DNA of 42,688 nt from Octopus sinensis (GCF_006345805.1 NW_021835093.1:1-42688); one strand, 5' to 3'. Positions 18,241-32,870 are shown, counted from the first letter of the stretch. The notes: generated from the sequence alone by a model not told the origin. A program made the numbers and translations.

Positions 18241-18952
18241 CACCGTTGTCAGACATTGCATTCATGTCTATCGGATGGAATGGAGAGTGAGGGGCGTTCA
18301 TCATTTCCCAGATTACTATGTTCCAAATAAATTCTTCTACCACTGCTGCTGCTGCTACTGTTGTTACCACCACGACTACTACTACTAATACTATTCTTAC
18401 TTCTAATCCTACTCCTCCTCCTCCAACTACTACTACCAATATTGTTATATCATCACCACTACTACTACTTCTACTACTACTACTACTACTACTACTACTA
18501 CTACCACCACCACCATCAACATTGAAGGTTAACTGAGTGCAGTTTAAATCTGGATCGCCAAACAACAGAACCATCAACAATAACAACAACAACAACAGCA
18601 GCAAGAACAACAACAATGTGCATATATAAGAAATCCAGGATATAAGAAAATCGATTTTGGTTGTGTCGGGTTAATATCCCAGAAAAAGATCAATAAAGGA
18701 AGAAGGCCAAACAATGCGATTTGGTGGGTTAAGAAGATTCTTTAATCAGGGTGGTGGGCATGGTTAGGTTGGTATCGGTGAATTATTGAGAAACGTATTG
18801 TAGACCAGCCGAGTTTATACTGGATGGATTACGTACAGACACTATTTTACATTTCATACACAGGGAAAACAACAAAAGCAACAACACCAATAATAATAAT
18901 AATAATAATAATAATAATAATAATAATAATAATAATAATAATAATAATAATA

Positions 18953-19160
18953 GTTCTTTCTGCTATAGGCACAAGGCGTGAGATTTGGGGGAGGGAGTTA
19001 AATTGATTACATCGACCCCAGTACTCAACTGGTACTTAATTTATCAGCCCCAAAAGGATGAAAGACGAAGTCATCCTCAGCGGAATTTGAACTCAGAACG
19101 TAAAAGGCTAGAAAAAATGCCGCAAATCATTTTTACCGGGGCTCAAACGATTCTACTAGC
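18953..19160 (-). mobile_element. SINE family A with (ATT)n tail
   Basis: Family A core on the minus strand; its 3' end CCTTGTGCCTATAGCAGAAAGAAC runs into the (TAA)n array at 18890-18951. Confidence 0.85.
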
Positions 19161-19177
19161 AATAATAATAATAATAA

Positions 19178-19392
19178 TCTTTTCTACAATAGGCACAAGG
19201 CCTGAAATTGTGAGGAAGGGGGCTAGTTGATTAGATTGATCCCAGTGCGTAACTGGTACTTAATTTTTCGACCTCGAAAGGATGAAAGGCAAAGTCGACC
19301 ACGGCGGAATTTGAACTCAGAACGTAGCGACGGGCGAAATATCGCTAAGTATTTCGTCCAACGTACTAACTATTCTGCCAGCTCGCCACCTT
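19178..19392 (-). mobile_element. SINE family A, full length, with (ATT)n tail
   Basis: Reverse complement begins AAGGTGGCGAGCTGGCAGAATAGTTAG, includes the B-box GAGTTCAAATTCC and the core, and is flanked by TAA runs. Confidence 0.9.
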
Positions 19393-19481
19393 AGCAAAAT
19401 AATAATAATAATAATAATATAATAATAATAATAATAATAATAATAATAATAATAATAATAATAATAATAATAATAATAATA

Positions 19482-20007
19482 CTCATGGCTTCTGATCTTA
19501 ACTGATTGGAAGTGTTATCATGTACATTGTTTTGTCTTGGTATAAAAGATGGCTACAGCAAATATTCTGCTCAATACCACAGATTTGCTTGTCAGTTGTT
19601 TGACCTTAACCAGTTGAGCATGTCCCTTAGTGGCTGACGATATGTGCATCTCTGATCACGAGCAGAAGTAGTGGGGGAGCATCATAGCCATGTGTTGAGA
19701 GGGATTCTTTGGGGTTTGAATAGTTCACCTCTGGAAACATGGGTGGTTCTTTCAACATCCTTAAACAACCCTTATTCAGGGACCGTTTGAGCGGGATGGG
19801 CTACTCAACCTGAAGAAAATTCTAACTGGGCCCCACCTGCAAGGTCATGTGCTGTTTATCTTGATATGAGATCACCATGTCGCGCACATATGGTTGTGAT
19901 GCATGTGCCTGGTGTACCTTTATCAGACGGGTAGTCATGATGGGTATATTGGGCTTCGTATATTTTACCCCAGTGTCACTTTGATGGCATGAACTGCTCT
20001 CTCACTC
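19482..20007 (+). mobile_element. Non-coding TAA-flanked retroposon family D, longest copy (526 bp)
   Basis: Shares its 3' end (..CTGCTCTCTCACTC then AATAAT) with 23354-23762 and 31749-31845; the 5' ends differ and each copy has TAA repeats on both sides. Confidence 0.8.
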
Positions 20008-20046
20008 AATAATAATAATAATAATAATAATAATAATAATAATTAA

Positions 20047-29867: not shown

Positions 29868-29995
29868 TCCTTTCTACTAAAGGTACAAGGCCTAGAGTTT
29901 GAGGGGACTTGTCGACTACATCGACCCCAGTGTTTCCCTGGTACTTAATTTATCAACGCCGAAAGGAAAATTCGACCACGACGGAATTTGAATTT
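29868..29995 (-). mobile_element. SINE family A, 3' portion with (ATT)n tail
   Basis: CCTTTCTACTAAAGGTACAAGGCC..CATCGACCCCAGTG..TGGTACTTAATTTATC..CGGAATTTGAA; its tail is the same TAA array that follows Dong copy 4. Confidence 0.75.
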
Positions 29996-31748
29996 GAATT
30001 TCAGTGTAACCTGAATATAATTTTTTCCCTTATACTTTTAGTTGTGCTTTTAGTTCAGGTGTGCTGCCGAATTTTGAAAAGAGTATAAGTGTGCCGCATG
30101 TGAAAAAAGGTTGCCTAGCACAGTGCTAGCGCCCACCATGCGTATGTATAGAAAGGAAGAGCAGGCTTTTAAAAACCTGTTAACATCAGGTTAGATAAGA
30201 TTAGATTTAGTGTGAGGAGAGCGTAAGAATACCAAAGGAATAACCATCACGCACACACAAACACACACACACGCACACACACACGCATACACGCACACAC
30301 AAAAGCACACATGCACGCACGCACACACAAACACTCACACACAGCCACTCACACACATAAACGCATACAAATAAACAATCAAACACGCACACACTGATAA
30401 ACACATACAAACAAACAAACACGCACACACAGAAATACACACACACACAAACACACACACACACGCACGCACACACGCACACACAAAATCACACAATCAC
30501 GCACGCACACACAAACGTTCACACACATAAACGCATACAAATAAACAAACAAACACGCACACACAAAAACATATACACACACAAAAACATATACACACGC
30601 ACGCAATACACTACTACACTGAGAACCAAAATAAGTAACTCTATTTACAGAAAGTAACCGATTCGTGCGCTAACAAGCGTGAAGAAACCTGTTAGTCAGG
30701 TCCCAGTTGACAATGATATATCTATCAATAATGATAACGCCTGGCTATATTTAGTAGGTGGTGGTGGTCGGAGAAGGAAGGAGGTCAGGAGAATTTATTT
30801 TATAAAAAGTGTTTGACTCAATTCAATTTGACGGCTTCACCTCGTCCTTTTACTGTAGAGCGCGATACGTCTTTACTGAAACACCGAATTTCAAGTCGGT
30901 TATTTCTCGCGTGAAAAGAAAGAATAACGAAAGAAATGAGTGATGGGTCTCGCTTGCTGGAATAGTTTCTGCTTGTATATCTTCATGTGTTTCTTTTGAG
31001 ATATGATTACATTGCAAATATTCATTGCTGGGTCAGACTTTTCGCTTATCTCTGTACTGCCAAGCCAAGCCAAGCAAATAATGAAATGAATATGGATGTG
31101 TGTGGGTGTGCCTGTGTATGTCTGTGTATGTGCGCACGCGCGAGCTTGTGTGTGTCTGTGTATCTATGTATATGTACATATATGTTTGTGCGTGTATATA
31201 TATATACACACAATATACAGACACAATATACAGACACACAATCACATATAAAGATACATAAATATATATATATATACATATATAATCAAGTAAATATACA
31301 TATATATTTATATATTAAATATATATGTGTGCATATATATATATATACGTGTGTGTATGTGTGTTTGTGTGTGTGTGTGAATGTATGTTTGTATCGTTGT
31401 ATATCTGTTTTTGCGTGTATAGGTGTGCATGTGTATGCGTGTGCGTGAAAAATACTCTTTCGCTTATACATATGCGCGATATATTCTCAAAATATTCACA
31501 CGCGTATGTGTGTACGTATGTCTATATATATATATATGTATATATATATATATATATATATATATATATATATATATATATATCTATATATATATATATA
31601 TATATATAAATGTATATGCACATAGACACACATATATATACACATACAAATTTACACGCTTCTCCACAAGCATATATATGTACACGCACACACTCATTAT
31701 TCTCATATTATTATTATTATTATTATTATTATTATTATTATTATTATT

Positions 31749-31845
31749 GAGTGAGAGAGCAGTTCATGCCATCAAAGTGACACTGGGGTAAAATATACGA
31801 AGCCCAATATACCCATCATGACTACCCGTCTGATAAGGGTACACC
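31749..31845 (-). mobile_element. Family D copy 3 (5'-truncated, 97 bp)
   Basis: Reverse complement matches 19911-20007; (ATT)n on both sides on the plus strand means (AAT)n on its sense strand. Confidence 0.85.
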
Positions 31846-31951
31846 ATTATTATTATTATTATTATTATTATTATTATTATTATTATTATTATTATTATTA
31901 TTATTATTATTATTATTACTACTATTATTATTATTATTATTATAATTATTA

Positions 31952-32157
31952 CAAACTAATTTAATTAGCAGCAATGGTATCCTAATGTTTGGTGACAACA
32001 AGTCTTTTCAACTCTCAAGATTCTTTCTTAGGATTCTCGCAGAATACAGAATGGTATTTTTCTGCCGATCGACAAATTCGTGTCTCAAAATTTCAATATT
32101 CTTCCACTTATTTGGATGCTGTACTCTGTACACCTGTTACCACAGGAACAAGGTTCG
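31952..32157 (-). mobile_element. 3' end of a second, older R4/Dong-like family
   Basis: Minus strand gives LVPVVTGVQSTASK then, after a frameshift, RQKNTILYSARILRKNLES*. This matches the RLE-LINE C-terminus (IPVVIGALG..QK..L.GTA.ILRK.L). A short 3'UTR runs into (AAT)n. Confidence 0.55.
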
Positions 32158-32159
32158 CT

Positions 32160-32870
32160 ACCTCATCCATCCCACCTCAGTCTGTGTTGCCTCTTCTGGA
32201 GTACTTTCAGGTGGAAAACCTTAGACAACTTCCATAACTCCTTGACATGGTAGTGCAACAGCTGGTGACAATCTCTTCGGGCATGGATGACCCAACAGTT
32301 GAACCCGTTCGGGATGTATTTAGCGGGGAAGAATCCTTTCAGTGTCCATACATTGCAATTTGTAGGTTTGTGTTGAGCAGCTACTGGCCTCATATAAGAC
32401 AGACGCGGCTGTCCGCCGAGTGTATAGGGAAGATCTGCACGCCAGCTTCTTTTGGCAGAGTAAGGAGTCGGATCTTTCTCTGCTTAGTGGCCGTGGTGAA
32501 AGAAGCTGTGTGGTGGACCAGTCAGAAAGGTTTGAAGACTCCTGTCTAACCAAACCCTCATCGGTTTCTTCAAATATCCTTCGAAGAGGAAGGTTGGGGT
32601 AGAGGGGAAGGTGCTGCCTTCCAATGTGCTTATCGAAAGGTGGGTGTGAGTGGCAAGACTGGAGAGGCTGAATGGATCTACTCTGAGTGTGTTTTTTGAA
32701 GTAGGAGGAAAGAAACTGGAAGATGGTATTTCCCATGCCTTGGAGCTGGCAGAGTATTCCGGGTCTTTCTGTGTTGGGTTTACCCTCAGTTACCCTGAAT
32801 GGTCTACCCAGCTATTGGGGATCCGATTTGTTAATAATTTTTATATCCTTTGGTTATATCCATACTGTTG
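32160..32870 (+). mobile_element. L1/Tx1-like LINE 3' fragment, degenerate
   Basis: DNFHNSLTW*C, DNLFGHG, FQCPYIA, RLSAEC, IFLCLVAVVKEAVWWT..KGL, LIGFFK..KRKV..ERW; homologous to 20047-20678. Confidence 0.6.

Follow-up and report, generated by a model that had tools for sequence, protein, structure and literature searches.

Dong elements target (TAA)n repeats in insects, molluscs and cnidarians (PMC3812793, PMC7998251), and a full-length Dong is known from Octopus bimaculoides (PMC9115989). A 5' HDV-like self-cleaving ribozyme was reported for Dong (PMC3774820). Other microsatellites harbor APE-type LINEs: Kibi and Koshi of the Tx1 group lie in (TC)n and (TTC)n, and Waldo and Mino of the R1 clade in (ACAY)n and (AC)n (PMC3812793). 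In LINE-SINE pairs the repeat tail is probably involved in priming (PMC3747384). The origin of microsatellites in the tails of L1 and Alu elements was reviewed by Grandi and An in 2013 (PMC3812793).

Here, a stretch of 42,688 nucleotides from Octopus sinensis (NW_021835093.1, the window) was analyzed, in which copies of several retroelement families are piled up in TAA-type arrays. The RT-encoding LINE of this pile-up resembles Dong (Bombyx mori), DongAg and DongBg (Biomphalaria glabrata) of the R4 clade in its single ORF with RT, CCHC and a C-terminal restriction-like endonuclease (RLE). With Dong/R4-clade LINEs it further shares the lack of an APE domain and of detected N-terminal zinc fingers, the insertion in (TAA)n with repeat on both sides and in fixed orientation, and a wide metazoan range including molluscs and cnidarians (PMC3812793, PMC7998251, PMC9115989). 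TAA targeting by Dong is already published, molluscs included, and the pile-up LINE is a further instance of it; in contrast to Dong, the octopus copies are degenerate and the 5' ribozyme was not detected (Rfam scan of 18000-33500). We know of no description of a dense multi-family pile-up as a feature of Dong.

R2, an RLE LINE specific for 28S rDNA, gives the best solved-structure matches and likewise inserts by target priming, in a strand-specific way, and enters its repeated target time and again, but this target is rDNA whereas here a microsatellite is hit, and the similarity is modest (E about 1e-19). For the second LINE of the pile-up, termed LINE-X, the nearest precedent is provided by Kibi/Koshi and Waldo/Mino, because these APE-type LINEs sit within a microsatellite matching their own 3' repeat (PMC3812793), as LINE-X does in (ATT)n. 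Unlike Kibi and Koshi, LINE-X is not strictly array-specific, and it is known here from 5'-truncated copies without the endonuclease region. LINE-X and the SINE termed SINE-A have about 25 nt plus (ATT)n in common, reminiscent of the common 3' end and short tandem-repeat tail of UnaL2/UnaSINE1 and other LINE-SINE pairs; the I factor also has a (TAA)n tail. Compared with UnaL2/UnaSINE1, however, the common stretch is short and the partnership is a putative, sequence-based one. The two-way relation reviewed by Grandi and An, in which elements bring repeats and repeats receive elements, applies to this locus as well, although both directions are treated separately there and a closed cross-family loop is not described (PMC3812793).

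Results

Using TRF, direct reading, a regex scan, self-BLAST and a listing of junctions, 14 retroelement segments with 14 TAA-type arrays (A1-A14) between them were delimited within 18889-32872. The segments comprise three copies of SINE-A, three of a family termed D, four of the Dong-like LINE, two of LINE-X and two unclassified insertions. According to the junction listing, 11-12 of the 14 elements have an array at the 5' end as well as at the 3' end, and about 25 of 28 element ends adjoin an array, although arrays make up only 4.2% of the window (regex scan); this association far exceeds chance. A reading made earlier from the sequence alone had counted at least 13 insertions over about 13 kb in TAA arrays, mostly flanked on both sides, which largely agrees with this anatomy. 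In none of the 14 segments is the element body visibly broken up by another element of the pile-up. The 12 arrays within 18889-29868 read AAT on the plus strand and the two within 31706-31951 read ATT, and every copy with determinable sense obeys one orientation rule: the Dong-like LINE (4/4) and family D (3/3), here class 1, have sense (AAT)n and a constant junction at the 3' end, while SINE-A (three copies) and LINE-X (two copies), here class 2, have (ATT)n on the sense strand.

The near full-length Dong-like copy (FL, plus strand, about 25150-29307) encodes RT, CCHC and RLE. From about 25665 its ORF, which carries frameshifts and stops, aligns colinearly with relatives of 1000-1125 aa, and RT domain PF00078 lies in 27169-29100 (E = 4e-20; relatives, 98-115 bits). 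The best PDB matches were R2 proteins, aligned from the RT through the endonuclease region to R2 residue 1129-1350. In the family alignment the CCHC columns C452, R453, C455, E460 and C469 are invariant and H464 is nearly invariant; they are followed by the RLE columns T528, D529, R530, N535, P537, D538 and D553, with RPD...D invariant. A Pfam scan of four full-length relatives, with which the window copy is colinear by tblastn, returned only RVT_1 and a weak zf-RVT, and neither an APE domain nor N-terminal zinc fingers. Placed by domains and target, the element is assigned as a Dong/R4-like RLE LINE. The 5' end of FL is not firmly placed and not clearly in an array. On that side, a TAA-like remnant spans 25130-25148, and positions 25146 and 25377 each carry the 13 bp sequence AACTGACAGATCC as a direct repeat. 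The Rfam scan mentioned above (E <= 1) returned no ribozyme, at an element whose 5' end is not fixed and for a ribozyme type that is poorly conserved in sequence. The other copies, all on the plus strand, are E6 (21406-23170; 5'-truncated, 91% identical to FL, 3' end GTCAAACATAG then (AAT)n), E8 (23858-24055; 198 bp of 3' UTR only) and E11 (29373-29796; a 424 bp 3' fragment, 93% identical to E6). The copies diverge by 7-16% from one another (self-BLAST). Two Dong-like families with five copies had been proposed, all with sense (AAT)n; one family with four copies was found in this orientation, and since tblastn with Dong-like proteins matched only these four in the window, the second family was dropped.

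Family D is represented by E3 (19482-20007, plus strand), the longest copy with 526 bp, in which no coding signal was found and whose constant 3' end CTCTCTCACTC is followed by (AAT)n, by the 5'-truncated E7 (23354-23762, plus strand, 409 bp) and by E13 (31749-31845, minus strand, 97 bp), which shares 99% identity with the 3' end of E3. As had been stated from the sequence alone, the three copies, including the one on the minus strand, have (AAT)n on their sense strand. The unclassified, non-coding E5 (20748-21332, 585 bp), which is flanked by arrays on both sides, contains a 42 bp repeat, ends in a hairpin, CCTTCGC-TAAG-GCGAAGG, immediately followed by (TAA)n, and is probably of plus sense; the unclassified E9 (24130-24406, 277 bp) also has arrays on both sides.

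LINE-X is represented by a 3' fragment on the minus strand (E4, 20044-20678) whose coding part, the final 114 codons of an L1-like ORF2, shows 75% identity to the C-terminus of protein P0122; a 3' UTR of about 285 bp ending in GCCCTTGTGGCCAATAAAAGAATTA and then (ATT)n follow. The second copy, E14 (31952-32872, plus strand), is 5'-truncated, and its 3' end is missing or replaced by a (AGT)n/(GGT)n array (32873-33027). The interval 31952-32157 had been read as a minus-strand Dong-like copy; this was rejected, as both family and strand differ: 32179-32808 matches L1-like ORF2 C-termini on the plus strand, and self-BLAST shows E14 to be homologous to E4 in opposite orientation. E14 therefore belongs to the ATT-sense class, with (ATT)35 on its 5' side. 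P0122 scored 36.1 bits for zf-RVT (cutoff 27.5), and the LINE-X relative P0128 matched LINE-1 ORF2p better than R2 in the PDB (1.5e-21 vs 2e-12). Judged by RT and zf-RVT of these relatives, the window copies themselves being 5'-truncated, LINE-X is classified as an L1-like LINE. Argonauta and O. sinensis share a conserved LINE-X 3' end, GCCCTTGTGGC(C/T)AATAAA then (ATT)n.

SINE-A is present on the minus strand as E1 (18953-19160, 208 bp, 3' end on the left), E2 (19179-19397, the longest copy with 219 bp, 3' end CAGGCCTTGTGCCTATTGTAGAAAAG then (ATT)n) and the 5'-truncated E12 (29869-29992, 124 bp). In E2, the minus strand of 19296-19330 contains a sequence resembling a B box, GAGTTCAAATTCC; no tRNA was called in SINE-A by ARAGORN or Rfam. 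The last approximately 25 nt of SINE-A plus (ATT)n resemble LINE-X 3' ends of three species, with a score reached by 0-1 of 500 shuffles for E1 and E2 and control 3' ends scoring far lower. Because the stretch is short, this gives moderate support to LINE-X as the partner of SINE-A, itself a putative tRNA-derived SINE. The sense (ATT)n previously noted for SINE-A and the 20 kb fragment was found here as well. That an L1-like LINE and its SINE, unrelated to Dong, use the opposite strand of the same arrays was less expected.

The arrays themselves differ in what borders them. A1 (18889-18952), a perfect (AAT)21, is the tail of E1 and has non-repeat DNA on its left; A2 (19161-19178), a perfect (AAT)6, serves as the tail for E2 and borders E1 on its 5' side; and A13 (31706-31748), a perfect (TAT)14, is the tail of E13. 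A4 (20008-20043, perfect (AAT)12) and A12 (29797-29868, perfect (AAT)24) lie between the 3' ends of E3 and E4 and of E11 and E12, respectively. In contrast, the junction listing places each of A3 (19398-19481, 28 units with one 1-nt phase slip, E2/E3), A5 (20679-20747, 23 units with one phase slip, E4/left end of E5) and A14 (31846-31951, (ATT)35, E13/E14) between two 5' ends. These arrays cannot be tails and are therefore pre-existing targets, which contradicts the view that arrays are only tails added during insertion. A6 (21333-21405) is (TAA)23, and A10 (24407-24481) is a degenerate TAA array with 78% matches.

In the remaining arrays, perfect repeats lie beside the 3' end of the neighboring element and interruptions away from it. 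A7 (23171-23353, 61 units) starts with 28 perfect units beside E6 and has four substitutions farther off; A8 (23763-23857, 32 units) with 16 beside E7, then a phase slip and substitutions; A9 (24056-24129, 25 units) with 18 beside E8, then one phase slip; and A11 (29308-29372, 21 units) with 14 beside FL. Tail-only arrays have no interruption in about 78 units and mixed arrays about 19 in about 250 units, a comparison that is post hoc and confounded with array length. The greater purity on the tail side fits fresh repeats being added at every insertion, and insertions do seem to add them, in line with the earlier proposal that each insertion regenerates target repeat. In relatives from other species no difference in purity between 3'-side and 5'-side arrays was found.

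Dong-like relatives from corals, from shrimps and from termite-associated contigs behave in the same way. Sense (AAT)n was present at 23 of 49 testable 3' ends and (ATT)n alone at none, and sense (AAT)n was located just upstream of 13 of 31 5'-truncated relatives, other phyla included. In all, 85 sense arrays vs 14 antisense arrays were counted in 276 kb. That the RLE LINE targets TAA arrays in fixed orientation, as had been claimed, thus holds in the window and among relatives, and was published for Dong (PMC3812793, PMC7998251).

Discussion

We consider it probable that two or three (TAA)n microsatellites were repeatedly entered by two classes of retroelements that use the repeat itself as the starting point of reverse transcription. 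Class 1 would have RNAs ending in (AAU)n and would comprise the Dong-like LINE and family D, probably also E5 and E9; the members other than the LINE would be mobilized by it in trans. This trans-mobilization is a guess, because no recognizable sequence is common to the Dong-like LINE and family D, E5 or E9. The class 1 protein would nick the array on a defined strand, with priming by the (ATT)n strand on the (AAU)n end of the RNA, so that a class 1 copy always has sense (AAT)n. Class 2 would have RNAs ending in (AUU)n and would comprise LINE-X and the putatively tRNA-derived SINE-A bearing the last approximately 25 nt of LINE-X. Such RNAs would pair only with the other strand, and copies would thus be antiparallel to class 1 in the same array. 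Class 2 is not strictly array-specific: both window copies of LINE-X adjoin arrays at their 5' ends, while copies outside arrays end in (ATT)4 in Argonauta (L085) and in about (ATT)1 in O. sinensis (L086). Each insertion would split the array, leave targetable repeat on both sides and add a new perfect tail, so that hits could accumulate without disrupting earlier copies. Array purity would then arise from tail addition.

The arrays could instead be nothing but 3' repeats brought by the elements, which became neighbors by chance or in an insertion-tolerant region. The appropriate repeat is indeed found at the 3' end of every element of known sense, and many relatives have just 5-8 units after the 3' UTR. 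We regard this as highly improbable in view of the three arrays between two 5' ends, the array-bound 5' ends of most elements, the uninterrupted element bodies and the sense (AAT)n directly upstream of 5'-truncated relatives in other phyla. A similarly slight probability is given to an assembler having chained loci via TAA arrays or to unequal exchange between arrays having gathered the elements. Simple repeats are extremely abundant in the window (207 TRF rows), but the arrays are short (18-183 bp), self-BLAST revealed no duplicated composite block of two different elements, and the same architecture, tandem copies with (AAT)n between them, occurs in independent assemblies of other species (L001, L064, L031, L003). 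Such tandem copies are also what would be expected if the pile-up arose in few events, with the RT, at the 5' end of one RNA, jumping onto the (AAU)n end of another and leaving head-to-tail truncated chains in a single insertion. Template jumping is established for the R2 reverse transcriptase, and the same-strand runs E6-E7-E8 and FL-E11 as well as a two-SINE composite at 2512-2832 with a single 15 bp duplication around both would be in agreement with it. As this process cannot yield antiparallel class 2 copies or arrays between two 5' ends, and as the LINE copies differ from one another and the arrays between chained copies contain older, interrupted repeat, it is an unlikely account of the locus; template-jump chains could explain part of the pile-up, not the whole.

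The sequence-only reading went further and proposed a full loop, in which the ATT tails of SINE-A and LINE-X seed TAA tracts, Dong-like elements target them and every insertion regenerates the target. In A4 and A12 the 3' repeats of one element from each class meet tail to tail, tail-side repeats are purer than the rest, and E12, which forms the right edge of the pile-up and has its 5' end in unique DNA, could therefore have supplied the seed with its tail. Also, the 14 insertions in pure arrays stand against none in the three long degenerate TAA arrays of the window (141-445, 1096-1391 and 13234-13659). These long arrays without any element indicate, on the other hand, that an ATT-tail seed is not needed. 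The creation of TAA tracts by ATT-tailed elements is further weakened by the one to four ATT units seen outside arrays, namely in the LINE-X copies mentioned above and in a SINE-A-like copy at 2512-2832, where a single ATT unit goes together with a target-site duplication of the ordinary kind, 15 bp long. Three SINE-A-like copies of the window lie outside arrays. Moreover, the arrays at the 5' ends of E2, E4 and E14 are not tails, which means that ATT-class copies, too, entered existing arrays, and a degenerate (GAT)n/(AAT)n remnant (25073-25148) suggests an older array to the left of the right-hand pile-up. The multi-family feedback loop is only partly supported, and in its full form we hold it to be doubtful.

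Repeated entry of existing microsatellites by two classes of elements remains the reading we favor. A more far-reaching version, which we put forward tentatively and regard as rather improbable, is that two mechanistically unrelated guilds, the RLE Dong-like LINE with AAT-tailed passengers and the L1-like LINE with its ATT-tailed SINE, act on opposite strands of the same array and each deposit fresh perfect repeats, which would make the array a self-renewing landing pad that grows with use. If true, such a landing pad would be one reason why TAA microsatellites are abundant and pure in the genomes of cephalopods.

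Elements and TAA-type arrays of the pile-up

The DNA is eukaryotic, with about 36% GC and an extreme abundance of simple repeats (TRF output of 207 rows). With TRF, a regular-expression search and direct reading we identified 12 TAA-type arrays within 18889-29868, which carry (AAT)n on the + strand, and two further arrays within 31706-31951, which carry (ATT)n on the + strand. The 14 segments between the arrays were delimited by self-BLAST and junction listing. They comprise three copies of SINE-A (E1, E2, E12), three of family D (E3, E7, E13), four of an RT-encoding, Dong-like LINE (E6, E8, the near full-length copy FL, and E11) and two of a second LINE, LINE-X (E4, E14), while E5 and E9 are unclassified and non-coding. 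An array adjoins about 25 of 28 element ends, and for 5' ends alone the count is 11-12 of 14; no element body is visibly split by another element of the pile-up. As TAA-type arrays make up 4.2% of the window, the accumulation of insertions in them, described by the sequence-only reading, is real and well beyond chance.

Three ends are exceptions. The 5' end of E12 sits in unique DNA, the 3' end of E14 adjoins an (AGT)n/(GGT)n array, and the 5' end of FL is undefined, a degenerate AGT-AAT-AAC-AAT-AAT-AAC remnant (25130-25148) being all that is present there. Two directly repeated copies of a 13 bp sequence, AACTGACAGATCC, at 25146 and 25377, enclose about 218 bp with an A-rich run; 25146-25389 may represent a small insert and its target duplication, in or close to the FL 5' end, blurring the FL junction. 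The (AGT)n array stands where the 3' UTR and tail of E14 would be expected. It belongs to a compound (AGT)n(GGT)n(AGT)n directly after E14 (32873-33045), and a compound (ACT)n(ACC)n(ACT)n lies to the left of the pile-up (18375-18521). These two are mutual reverse complements, up to 93% over 67-70 bp, and bracket the whole region, a match that may be due to chance between simple repeats. The segment 24482-25072 has no repeat partner and may be original DNA parting a left from a right pile-up. No target site duplication around the entire pile-up was seen by eye when 18860-18888 was compared with 29993-30030.

The main LINE and family D

RVT_1 was detected by Pfam in the ORF at 27169-29100 of the main LINE. 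Among solved structures it matched R2 retrotransposon proteins best, in alignments that run from the RT into the region of the endonuclease. In an alignment with ten relatives CRxC...E...C was invariant and H nearly invariant, followed by TDR..ANRPD...D, which is the CCHC and restriction-like endonuclease arrangement of R2-type elements. Neither an APE domain nor an N-terminal zinc finger was found in full-length relatives (1000-1125 aa). R4/Dong elements consist of an RT and a REL-endonuclease without a recognisable N-terminal motif, and in insects, molluscs and cnidarians the target of Dong elements is (TAA)n (PMC3812793, PMC7998251); the repeat library of Octopus bimaculoides includes a full-length Dong (PMC9115989). 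Judged by its domains and target, the main LINE is Dong/R4-like. Relatives were found in corals, anemones, penaeid shrimps, killifish, insects and many metagenome contigs. In tblastn searches of the window their proteins matched E6, FL and E11 only, and E8 consists of the 3' UTR alone. All four copies end in ...GTCAAACATAG (CAT in E8), followed by (AAT)n. Rfam detected no HDV-like ribozyme at the 5' end, which is undefined in FL, and its scan for ribozymes and tRNA gave low-complexity chance matches only.

All three family D copies have a common end, CTCTCTCACTC and then (AAT)n, while the opposite end varies (copies of 526, 409 and 97 bp). Since variation at one end is as in 5' truncation, the common end is the 3' end, which means that the sense strand of E13, a minus-strand copy, likewise carries (AAT)n. 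Given 99% identity between E13 and E3, one or both are young. Family D showed no coding signal and no similarity to the Dong-like LINE, by whose machinery we infer it to have been moved. By BLAST, family D, E5 and E9 were unmatched in all 86 retrieved loci, and the pattern GGCGRAGGTAATAA was absent from 83 fetched loci. RNA folding of the 3' ends gave z-scores no further than -1.8 and no structure common to the families.

Junctions of Dong-like relatives elsewhere

Relative loci were taken from metagenome contigs (80) and long contigs (three), and 3' ends were scored for sense (AAT)n of at least 4 units no more than 300 bp from the end of the protein match. Such repeats were present at 23 of 49 testable 3' ends, and (ATT)n alone at none, demonstrating that the fixed-orientation enrichment of (AAT)n claimed for the junctions in this window also exists in Dong-like relatives elsewhere. 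Among copies matching from well inside the protein, 13 of 31 had sense (AAT)n within 200 bp upstream, mostly within 25 bp. Across 276 kb of relatives, 85 arrays were sense versus 14 antisense. In Penaeus chinensis a full-length copy (L003) lies between (AAT)12 and (AAT)19, and tandem copies or fragments separated by (AAT)n were found at three loci (L001, L064, L031). Pile-ups and tandems are a general property of the Dong-like clade.

At L001 (183-9132), on a 1.9 Mb eukaryotic contig from a metagenome in ENA, three Dong-like copies, two of them near full-length and the third 5'-truncated, are arranged head to tail with nothing but (AAT)5 in between; as a tandem it is a cleaner counterpart of the pile-up. 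(ACT)n stands at the 3' end of two relatives from a single sequencing project. L054 (match 145-1373) has 26 units of (ACT)n there and about 25 units of (AAT)n on the 5' side, and in L040 (match 154-1333) the 3' repeat is (ACT)5(GCT)8(ACT)7. (CT)n occurs in a further relative, L016, and (AGC)n/(GTT)n in another, L073. A change of 3' repeat or of target may have taken place within the Dong-like clade.

LINE-X and SINE-A

E4 and E14 are homologous, in opposite orientation and with 66% nucleotide identity. When 1.8 billion representative proteins were searched with the ORF at 32247-32549 (+ strand), C-termini of LINE ORF2 were obtained. One of these relatives, P0122, contains zf-RVT above the Pfam threshold and shares 75% identity with E4 as translated on the minus strand. 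RT-bearing LINE-X relatives best matched human LINE-1 ORF2p, and annotated proteins of Argonauta hians and Octopus sinensis are among the relatives. By tblastn, E4 maps to 20681-20328 (minus strand) and E14 to 32179-32808 (+ strand). Pfam gave no match on 31952-32872 in six frames or on the short ORFs of E4 and E14. Codon-phase substitutions between E4 and E14 showed a weak excess at one phase (46 vs 33-35), and the strand was settled afterwards by the protein homology.

The Tx1-like fragment of the sequence-only reading corresponds to E4, on the minus strand and with (ATT)n on the sense strand, as described. The same homology shows that 31952-32157, taken there for a minus-strand Dong-like element, is the upstream part of the + strand LINE-X copy E14. 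The family assignment thus fell and the orientation rule itself stood, as (ATT)35, in the sense of E14 itself, adjoins the 5' end of that copy. LINE-X copies have a conserved 3' terminus: E4 ends in ...CAGCCCTTGTGGCCAATAAAAGAATTA, then (ATT)12, the Argonauta copy in ...GCCCTTGTGGCTAATAAAAGAAATA, then (ATT)4, and the O. sinensis copy in ...GCCCTTGTGGCTAATAAAGAAATT without an array.

SINE-A copies end in ...CAGGCCTTGTGCCTATTGTAGAAAAG, followed by (ATT)n. This end resembles that of LINE-X more than shuffled controls do (E1, E2: 0-1 of 500) and more than the 3' ends of other families, which makes SINE-A the probable non-autonomous partner of LINE-X. ARAGORN detected no tRNA. Two external LINE-X copies and three SINE-A-like copies in the window (two in 2521-2832, one at 3156-3351) lie outside arrays, and the composite at 2512-2832 has an ordinary 15 bp target duplication and one ATT unit. 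The preference of both families for arrays hence seems to be facultative.

Within 2497-2847 two SINE-A-related copies are arranged head to tail. The first ends in ...GCCCCTTGTGGGCAGTAAAGAAATAA at about 2723, the second, 5'-truncated, in ...GTAGAAAAGATT at 2832, and one direct repeat, TTCT(G/A)CAAGGCAGAT, flanks the pair (2497-2511 and 2833-2847), which suggests that the dimer arose in a single event, e.g. by template switching. Other SINE-like families, at 36190-36520, 2334-2506, 15454-15620, 4244-4390, 40352-40440 and 41929-42061, are not located beside any TAA array; one has a tRNA-like head, GGCGCAAGAGTGGCTGTGTGGTAAG..., and another starts with TTGCCAGCTGAGTGGACTGGAGCAACG....

Arrays as targets

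If the arrays were merely 3' repeats brought along by the elements, none should lie between two 5' ends. This is contradicted by A3 (19398-19481), between the 5' ends of E2 and E3, and A14 (31846-31951), between those of E13 and E14; A5 (20679-20747) has E4 (5' end) on one side and E5 (left end) on the other. These three cannot be the 3' repeat of their neighbours and are remains of pre-existing arrays, which copies of the ATT class (SINE-A and LINE-X) consequently entered. On this window-internal evidence, the arrays are not merely tails added at insertion. Template jumping could account for some same-strand chains (E6-E7-E8 and FL-E11), and the SINE composite at 2512-2832 with its single target duplication shows that such events occur; however, it cannot yield copies in antiparallel orientation, and divergence among the chained LINE copies is 7-16%. 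That misassembly or unequal exchange built the pile-up is unlikely, as the arrays are short, no composite block is duplicated and the same architecture is present in assemblies of other species.

Proposed origin of the orientation rule

Insertion into pre-existing arrays by established target-primed reverse transcription (TPRT) would constrain orientation. For an (AAU)n RNA end the only pairing partner would be a nicked DNA strand of (ATT)n, for an (AUU)n end the (AAT)n strand, and the new copy would be placed on the strand opposite the primer. Each class should thus have one orientation, with the two classes antiparallel, and this was observed in all 12 copies of known sense. We infer that the orientation rule arises from tail-strand pairing. 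In the Dong-like LINE, strand-specific nicking by its own protein would add true site specificity.

Possible target renewal

The sequence-only reading further proposed that each insertion regenerates a target. Arrays consisting of a tail only (A1, A2, A4, A12, A13; about 78 units) had no interruptions, whereas those with non-tail repeat (A3, A5, A7-A11, A14; about 250 units) had about 19. The latter rate predicts about 6 in 78 units (Poisson P ~0.003, a post hoc comparison partly confounded with array length). Perfect runs in A7 (23171-23353), A8 (23763-23857), A9 (24056-24129) and A11 (29308-29372), of 28, 16, 18 and 14 units, always adjoin the 3' end of an element, with the interruptions further off, and the three long insertion-free arrays are the most degenerate (86-88% matches). 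In the relatives no purity asymmetry between the 3' and 5' sides was detected, as both sides are mostly perfect and short. Target renewal has some support from the purer tail-side repeats of the window: insertions may add fresh repeats, and pure repeats may draw insertions. The claim that ATT-tailed elements create TAA tracts is the weakest link, since tails outside arrays have 1-4 units and element-free TAA arrays exist. A closed multi-family feedback loop between the TAA microsatellite and the elements is a less probable reading.

Exactly one 1-nt phase slip (...AATAAT-AT-AATAAT...) was observed in each of A3, A5, A8, A9 and A10 (24407-24481) and none in tail-only arrays; the slips might mark joins of new and old repeat. 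An (AAT)n array with about 100 bp of flank (141-544) is repeated inverted at 1385-986, with 86.6% identity and about 440 bp apart, and a 19 nt inverted repeat brackets the first arm (CCATAAATACCTGTTGGCC at 122-140, GGCCAACAGGTATTTATGG at 541-561). The pair 122-561 and 986-1385 may be a foldback-type element or an inverted duplication with a TAA array.

Significance

The core mechanism, (TAA)n targeting by Dong-type elements, is already known, including in molluscs, and most of the findings are expected from it. The window is a clean natural case of TPRT fixing element orientation, in which the strand of the tail repeat decides, and that repeats act as targets beyond being tails could be shown from sequence alone. 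Two aspects are of modest novelty: a cephalopod L1-like LINE/SINE pair, (ATT)n-tailed and antiparallel in arrays shared with Dong-like elements, and sequence-internal evidence for arrays that pre-date insertions and are refreshed by them. If growth by insertion holds genome-wide, the expansion of microsatellites in cephalopods would be tied to retroelement activity, and TAA arrays would be predictable 'safe' landing sites.
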